Source: Botryllus schlosseri
Lineage: Eukaryota
Direction of reading: 5' to 3'
Assembly: GCA_051294905.1 (NCBI GenBank)
Contig: CM119371.1
Coordinates: forward strand, 27,404,001-27,468,000
Length of the DNA: 64,000 nucleotides
A program made the translations under genes and the position numbers. The notes below the pieces were generated by a model. That model made no database searches. It was not told the origin of the DNA and saw nothing but the letters and a program-made list of their open reading frames with translations. Shown one piece after another: positions 24,031 to 24,101 of this stretch (the first letter of the stretch is position 1; each line of letters begins with the position of its first letter).

Positions 24031-24040
24031 AATACAACAA
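23895..24040 (-). CDS. PKN: Fused exon K1': [48 protein letters not shown]
   Basis: Identity to K1 stops at 24030. A CAG acceptor at 24041-24043 adds 10 nt that put the exon in frame with the preceding phase-0 C2 exon across a 61-nt GT-AG intron. Confidence 0.7.
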
Positions 24041-24101
24041 CTGATTTTGTCAGAAAGTAGCATGTCCTATCGAATCTATCGAGCGCAACAAAACACGTTA
24101 C

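Follow-up and report, generated by a model that had tools for sequence, protein, structure and literature searches.

A 71-nt intron remnant at a breakpoint of a rearranged, 5'-truncated PKN duplicate in Botryllus schlosseri

The 71 nt that follow the last C2-like exon of a PKN gene in Botryllus schlosseri are a remnant of intron at one of two breakpoints of a structural rearrangement within a 5'-truncated PKN duplicate. On balance, we read the junction as an incidental scar, in a copy that was recently disabled or is expressed in some other way, rather than as a selected, linker-less isoform. The stretch of DNA that was analyzed in full, here called the window, comprises 64,000 nt (GCA_051294905.1, CM119371.1:27,404,001-27,468,000), and the gene lies on its minus strand. 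Judged by its sequence, the window gene is an intron-containing segmental duplicate. Its parent is an intact PKN gene on contig C16 of the same genome, which it covers from exon C2a through the 3' end. The features discussed below are listed in Table 1.

Table 1. Positions in the window of the intron remnant, the two junctions, the duplicated exon pair and the transposable elements
Feature	Position	Strand	Description
Exon C2b	24102..24248	-	Last C2-like exon; ends ...EPQGILFAE in phase 0; 73% to Dreissena PKN2-like P0014 (tblastn)
71-nt segment	24031..24101	-	First 71 nt of the parental post-C2b intron; 67/71 identical to C16:5502017-5502087
Candidate cryptic CAG acceptor	24041..24043	-	Would make a 61-nt intron, 24041-24101; same CAG unused in the parental intron
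Junction 1	24030..24031		Parental intron base 71 to K1, 24 nt (8 codons) past the first full codon of native K1; 1-nt microhomology
Copy A	22792..24030	-	1,239-bp duplicate of 18999-20237; 97.8% identical, 27 mismatches, no indels
Parts of copy A	Partial exon K1A 23895-24030; 65-nt intron; exon K2A 23653-23829; ~860 nt of intron	-	From self-alignment
Junction 2	22792..22796		5-nt microhomology ATCGA, present both inside the transposon and at the 3' end of the duplicated segment
hAT-like non-autonomous transposon	20710..22796	+	Left end intact; 109-bp internal deletion; last 57 nt and right TIR missing
Nested MITE	21576-22285		710 bp inside the hAT-like element; intact 8-bp target duplication GCCTACAC
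Native 5' end of K1B	20238-20260, acceptor AG 20261-20262 (within 20238..20709)	-	Preceded by 449 nt of intron that align with the parent as far as the transposon site
Copy B	18999..20237	-	Source-like, in ancestral context; exons K1B (20102-20260 in full) and K2B (19860-20036)

The window gene and its intact parent

The parental locus was found by a search of the animal's own genome. On C16, C2b and the 71 nt match at 95%, and K1-K2 match at 95% some 2.9 kb beyond the C2b match. The window and C16 are colinear at window positions 10787-20710 and 24030-26306, with 85-95% identity and many intron indels; homology to the parent stops at 26306. When 21 PKN orthologues were used as tblastn queries on the window and on C16, the parent was found to contain HR1 exons, C2 exons, linker exons and K1-K7. 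The order there is HR1 exons, C2a, C2b, a 316-nt intron, at least three conserved linker exons and K1-K7. The exon set of the window consists only of C2a, C2b, two K1-K2 pairs and K3-K7. None of the exons for the three N-terminal HR1 repeats of PKN was matched in the window by these queries, and the same queries match HR1 on C16.

The window copy starts at C2a, without a promoter, HR1 exons or the first C2 exon. Its C2-like domain is incomplete and comprises the last two exons only (C2a and C2b), on which the Pfam C2 model gave no match. The parental exon that matches residues 309-364 of the Dreissena polymorpha PKN2-like protein (P0014), the best orthologue to the PKN locus, lies outside the duplicated segment. 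The AGC kinase domain and its C-terminal tail are present, with Pkinase and Pkinase_C matches exon by exon (Pfam). Identity to PKN orthologues is 64-89% over K1-K5 (~75-89% in K2-K5) and 39-51% in K6-K7. The kinase motifs include GRGHFGKV, the activation-loop sequence TFCGTPEF, a further 12-residue segment and the Pkinase_C tail.

Two other relationships between the loci were rejected. A retrocopy origin is contradicted by the retained introns. C16 is not a haplotig of the window: intron divergence is 10-15% with numerous indels, and C16 carries 5' exons with no counterpart in the window.

A 3-nt insertion specific to the window (coding-strand ATC, 24228-24230) gives exon C2b an extra Ile (MEIICVYW versus MEICVYW); it is a marker by which transcripts of the copy can be told from parental ones. 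Upstream of the truncated gene, past the end of parental homology at 26306, the minus strand holds long ORFs at 30590-32244 (258 and 202 aa) whose translations, judged by eye, resemble a non-LTR retrotransposon reverse transcriptase. Within the K4-K5 intron, 303 bp (17762-18064) match their own reverse complement at 83%. This palindromic stretch is probably another MITE, and a 93-bp piece at 15447-15539 is related to it.

The two breakpoints and the loss of the linker

The donor GTAACG begins at 24101, and C2b closes with a complete codon at 24102 (...ILFAE). After this donor, C16 agrees with the window for exactly 71 nt and then diverges. A sequence-only reading of the window had already proposed that the DNA jumps into the middle of K1 at this distance from the donor, and the comparison bears this out: homology to K1B and to parental K1 begins exactly at 24030, and homology to the parental intron ends exactly at 24031. 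The same reading had used the CAG at 24041-24043 to define a 61-nt intron similar in size to those nearby. The coordinates agree (24101-24041), and the nearby K1-K2 intron measures 65 nt (23894-23830). The CAG is followed by 10 nt, TTGTTGTATT, and then by ACTTCCGGTCG..., sequence from inside kinase exon K1. That this acceptor would keep the frame was also correctly seen: reading from 24040 gives a 19-residue peptide in the K1 frame, with a putative junction FAE/LLYYFRS. The in-frame property alone is weak evidence, with a 1-in-3 chance for a sole usable AG. Three AGs occur in the 71 nt, and one alone leaves an intron of >35 nt.

The interpretation that had been placed on the 10 nt fails. They had been taken as the start of the original first linker exon, and the event as an in-frame, exon-to-exon deletion, a view favored by the in-frame reading and by nothing else. 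In the parent, TTGTTGTATT constitutes bases 62-71 of the 316-nt intron and an in-frame TAG comes next; CAG followed by TTGTTGTATTATTAG reads LLYY-stop (TTG TTG TAT TAT TAG). The left edge of the lost stretch is parental intron base 71, and the event ran from intron to mid-exon. It had been suggested that an intact paralog or orthologue be inspected for a post-C2 exon starting 61 nt after the donor. The next exon of the parent starts 316 nt after the donor and begins VTFSNPRIERRPKLQRQ (VTFSNP), as it does in orthologues and in the contig of a related species. We regard the literal exon-to-exon reading as hardly credible.

The first linker exon of the parent opens VTFSNPRIERRPKLQRQKIF, and later exons encode GKSFLRAQQMNINIATWGRLMKR... 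and AQKLDF.... The parental linker exons match the linker of orthologues, and the genomic contig of the related species has the same order as the parent, C2b-L1-L2-L3-K1. The earlier claim that the window lacks linker exons was confirmed by tblastn with seven orthologous linkers, which gave no match at E<=1 in the whole 64 kb; the parental C16 locus, used as a positive control, was matched by the same queries down to E 1e-14. The parent's own linker peptides produced chance-level matches only in the 64 kb (E 0.3-10), none of them near the gene. Likewise, the linker motifs VTFxNPxIxRxPKLQRQ and QMNINxATWGRL are absent from the 64 kb and are found on C16 and on the contig of the related species. 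The parental stretch that has left no trace in the window measures 2,434 bp (C16:5499582-5502015); copy A and 2,086 bp of transposon now occupy this position. The word deletion, as used in the sequence-only reading, is right in that the linker exons were truly lost. The event was not a simple one, in that the joined K1 belongs to a 1,239-bp K1-K2 duplicate and a truncated transposon occupies the other junction. A passage in PMC7925014 (citing Yoshinaga 1999) places an arachidonic-acid-sensitive autoinhibitory segment in the C2-kinase linker region.

In a self-comparison of the window, copies A and B are sharply bounded at either end. Copy A starts without transition at 24030, and copy B lies 3,793 bp downstream of it. 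In copy B, K1 has a strong acceptor and eight more codons (STQIGMKD) before FRSIAVLG. The splice phases of K2A and K1B match, and in-frame joining is possible. The A/B duplication is young, as judged by a divergence of 2.2% compared with ~10% for introns between the loci. Derived changes since the duplication comprise two synonymous and no non-synonymous changes in copy A and four non-synonymous changes in copy B, where the derived residues are H>S (in the glycine loop), Y>F and L>S. The resulting ratio for the exons (four non-synonymous and two synonymous changes, Ka/Ks 0.55) is compatible with neutrality, from counts too small to tell whether the gene survived the rearrangement.

Two codons of the exon pair differ among copies. 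The glycine-loop codon is CAC (His) in copy A (23996-23998) and in the parent and AGC (Ser) in copy B (20203-20205), Ser being the usual AGC-kinase residue at this codon. A B-type contig of DNA run X15 has AAC (Asn), a one-step intermediate, so that in copy B this codon is either polymorphic or still in flux. Where the K1-K2 intron splits a codon (23895/23829 and 20102/20036), both window copies read TGC (Cys) and the parent reads CGC (Arg), and orthologues have Ser. In a predicted 326-aa protein from another organism (P0001), the PKN kinase C-lobe and tail occur twice in tandem, in identical form. Read-through of duplicated PKN kinase exons by gene models may thus not be confined to this genome.

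The left end of the transposon is the exact point at which homology to the parental intron stops. The element belongs to a hAT-like family of 1.52-1.55 kb with TIR CAGGCGCGTAGCC (also recorded as CAGGCGCGTAGCCAG), and four other copies have 8-bp target duplications. Copies of the family are 96-97% alike. The nested 710-bp MITE has TIR CAGGGCTGGCCAACC. A genome search with a query spanning both elements returned >6,000 first-look candidates; both are very deep in the DNA runs and are also present in RNA contigs. Two origins for the arrangement were rejected. Transposon-mediated capture or alternative transposition does not fit, because junction 2 is 57 nt inside the MITE rather than terminal and no other genomic copy of the MITE carries K1-K2. 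A simple 3,793-bp tandem duplication is not the whole story, because just the first 1,239 bp of the units match.

We infer the order and mechanism of events as follows. A hAT-like MITE would have inserted first, in the intron upstream of K1 of the window copy. A later event would have removed all linker exons together with their flanks, beginning at intron base 72 after C2b and taking with it the last 57 nt of the MITE. The lost stretch (~2.4 kb plus the 57 nt of MITE) would have been replaced by a 1,239-bp copy of mid-K1, the adjoining intron, K2 and ~860 nt of the next intron. This may have occurred in a single template-switching repair or replication event that passed from intron base 71 to mid-K1, copied 1,239 bp and returned into the transposon. 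It may also have occurred by a 3,793-bp tandem duplication followed by a ~5-kb deletion, a term that would be apt for this second step. The two routes account for the final structure equally well. The locus has the features of a microhomology-mediated complex rearrangement, namely microhomology at the junctions (1 nt and 5 nt), a templated copy from 3.8 kb downstream and a deletion. It resembles FoSTeS/MMBIR (PMC2621351) in combining a deletion with a templated segment from a few kb away and 1-5 nt of microhomology at both junctions. It differs in that two simple steps fit as well and that one breakpoint lies inside a transposon.

Four public runs were compared with window positions 18420-24400. 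X15 and X17 are independent DNA contigs, X23 consists of raw RNA reads, and X3 consists of transcript contigs, its RNA origin being shown by a spliced contig K3-K2-K1. The DNA runs bear on whether the rearrangement is an assembly artefact, in which a single segment was assembled twice in a row, once per haplotype, and the junction is in no chromosome. The A/B divergence of 2.2% would allow this, as it falls within the allelic range of very polymorphic invertebrates. No contig among the displayed pieces of X15 and X17 crosses 24030/24031. Against an artefact, the assembly has no Ns here, both junctions lie in unique sequence with microhomology rather than in a shared overlap, and a mis-join would not put 2.5 kb of intron and transposon between the copies. 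In X15, A-type (23167-23507) and B-type (18954-19340) contigs are both at ~80x, haplotype-specific pieces are at ~44x, and one contig bridges K1B, the intron and the MITE (20208-20737). These depths and the K1B-intron-transposon contig argue that the locus is real, and we consider an artefact very unlikely.

Selection, transcripts and possible use of the candidate acceptor

The coding sequences of window and parent were compared over 408 aligned codons, which yielded a Ks of 0.167, a Ka of 0.0126 and a Ka/Ks of 0.076. A copy drifting since birth is expected to have a Ka/Ks of ~0.5; purifying selection therefore acted on the head-less paralog during most of its existence. Exon-limited gene conversion was rejected as the cause of the low ratio, because Ks (0.167) is not below the divergence of the introns (~10-12%). 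Window and parent differ at 12 amino acids, nine of them window-derived. Five of these nine are in K4, four at positions that are invariant in the seven animal PKNs across which kinase positions were judged. The window-derived replacements in K4 turn EFLAPE into EFIAPE and FEMLVGE into FKMLVRK. The second cluster, at the end of K4 (18233-18250, minus strand), results from a 21-nt stretch with 5 nucleotide differences from the parent and makes three charge/size changes in a motif conserved in all PKNs compared.

One X3 contig contains K3-K2-K1 followed by 107 nt that are absent from the window, and it has parent-specific letters at 20169 and 20209. A second contains C2b up to 24100 and then 367 nt that are absent from the window; this continuation fits the parent's C2b-to-L1 splice, because L1 starts with GT. 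The transcript contigs display only the parent's C2b-to-linker and linker-to-K1 junctions, and none of those in X3 joins 24102 to 24040, although an absence cannot be proved from contigs. In raw RNA run X23, sampled at 6%, essentially no reads fall on any PKN exon, the parent's included, and reads of conserved genes may have been filtered. Fourteen RNA-like runs hold just 12-14% of the words found in 23640-24260, equivalent to roughly one exon. Among annotated and Logan-derived proteins, none of window type was found for the ORF spanning C2b and the junction (the match is the parental form of a related species), and a PKN query returned other species only.

The reading frame would be kept only if the intronic CAG serves as an acceptor, which is plausible from its sequence. 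Its pyrimidine content is 0.59, and real acceptors of the same gene range from 0.47 to 0.76; by this comparison of pyrimidine tracts, the candidate is not distinguishable from them. A branch-point-like motif, CTGAC, lies 10 nt upstream of the CAG. As in cryptic splice-site activation, deletion of the natural acceptor has left an AG that the parent does not use as the first one downstream of the donor; here it is a candidate site only.

Were the splice used and of consequence, the product would be a head-less, linker-less PKN in which a C2 remnant is fused to the kinase core. It would contain a single N-lobe (K2A joined to K3) or both exon pairs, and the rearrangement would have been kept for preserving a working kinase. 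We find this reading doubtful, even though several observations favor it. The frame is kept across the junction, and the kinase core is complete from the first Pfam position. The breakpoint is in the only part of K1 ahead of the core, a stretch of 25 nt (copy A aligns to Pfam Pkinase starting at profile position 3, and the first residue corresponds to about position 1). We estimate that this placement, together with a frame kept through the sole usable AG, would arise for ~0.1-0.3% of random breakpoints, which hints at selection. The strong past purifying selection and the purely synonymous derived changes of copy A, as opposed to the non-synonymous ones of copy B, point the same way. The 61-nt length is the local intron size, the acceptor context is within the range of the gene, and K2A can join K1B in frame. 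However, the splice is seen in no RNA contig or read, on RNA evidence that is thin (the raw run covered no exon here), and the same CAG is passed over in the parental mRNA, whose contig continues with bases that match the start of L1. A candidate branch point only 10 nt from the AG is close. The intact splice sites of K1B and K2B would tend to their inclusion and hence to a doubled half-domain. Furthermore, the window-derived changes at invariant kinase residues are radical, and the copy has neither its own promoter nor 5' exons. We infer that the acceptor is at present not used, which is the incidental scar proposed at the outset. A lineage-specific PKN paralog that lacks HR1, half of the C2-like domain and the linker, that is still translated through the recruited intronic CAG eight codons into K1 and that is kept by selection as a "PKM-like" kinase, possibly with copies A and B as alternative N-lobe pairs, seems to us unlikely.

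Comparison with known kinases and significance

The window gene shares with PKN/PRK (PKN1-3, AGC family) the C-terminal part of the C2-like domain, the kinase domain and the Pkinase_C tail, with 39-89% identity to mollusc, arthropod and vertebrate PKN. In contrast to these proteins, it has no HR1a-c exons, first C2 exon or linker and carries two copies of the N-lobe exon pair. Three of the four elements of the full PKN architecture (HR1, a complete C2-like domain and the linker) are missing, and the kinase with its tail is retained. PKM-zeta is a kinase-only isoform without a regulatory N terminus; the truncation of the window gene, unlike that of PKM-zeta, is not promoter-based. In PKN1/2, removal of the HR1 pseudosubstrate/Rho-binding repeats, the C2-like domain and the adjacent arachidonic-acid-sensitive region by caspase-3 or limited proteolysis activates the kinase (PMC7925014). 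The window gene resembles such constitutively active fragments in that the regulatory N terminus is gone and the catalytic domain is whole (PMC7925014). Its truncation is genomic, by partial gene duplication and rearrangement, rather than proteolytic.

By analogy, a translated product, if made, would behave as a constitutively active PKN fragment. For annotation, gene models at this locus should not be read as normal PKN. The case, otherwise ordinary, is a well-resolved remodelling of a partial gene duplicate, in which a transposon insertion would have been followed by microhomology-mediated loss of some four exons and local duplication. That a head-less PKN copy was long kept as a coding gene (Ka/Ks 0.08) is notable in its own right. 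If the cryptic splice were used, the locus would encode in the germline a PKN catalytic domain without any known autoinhibitory element and would be a natural experiment on PKN regulation.
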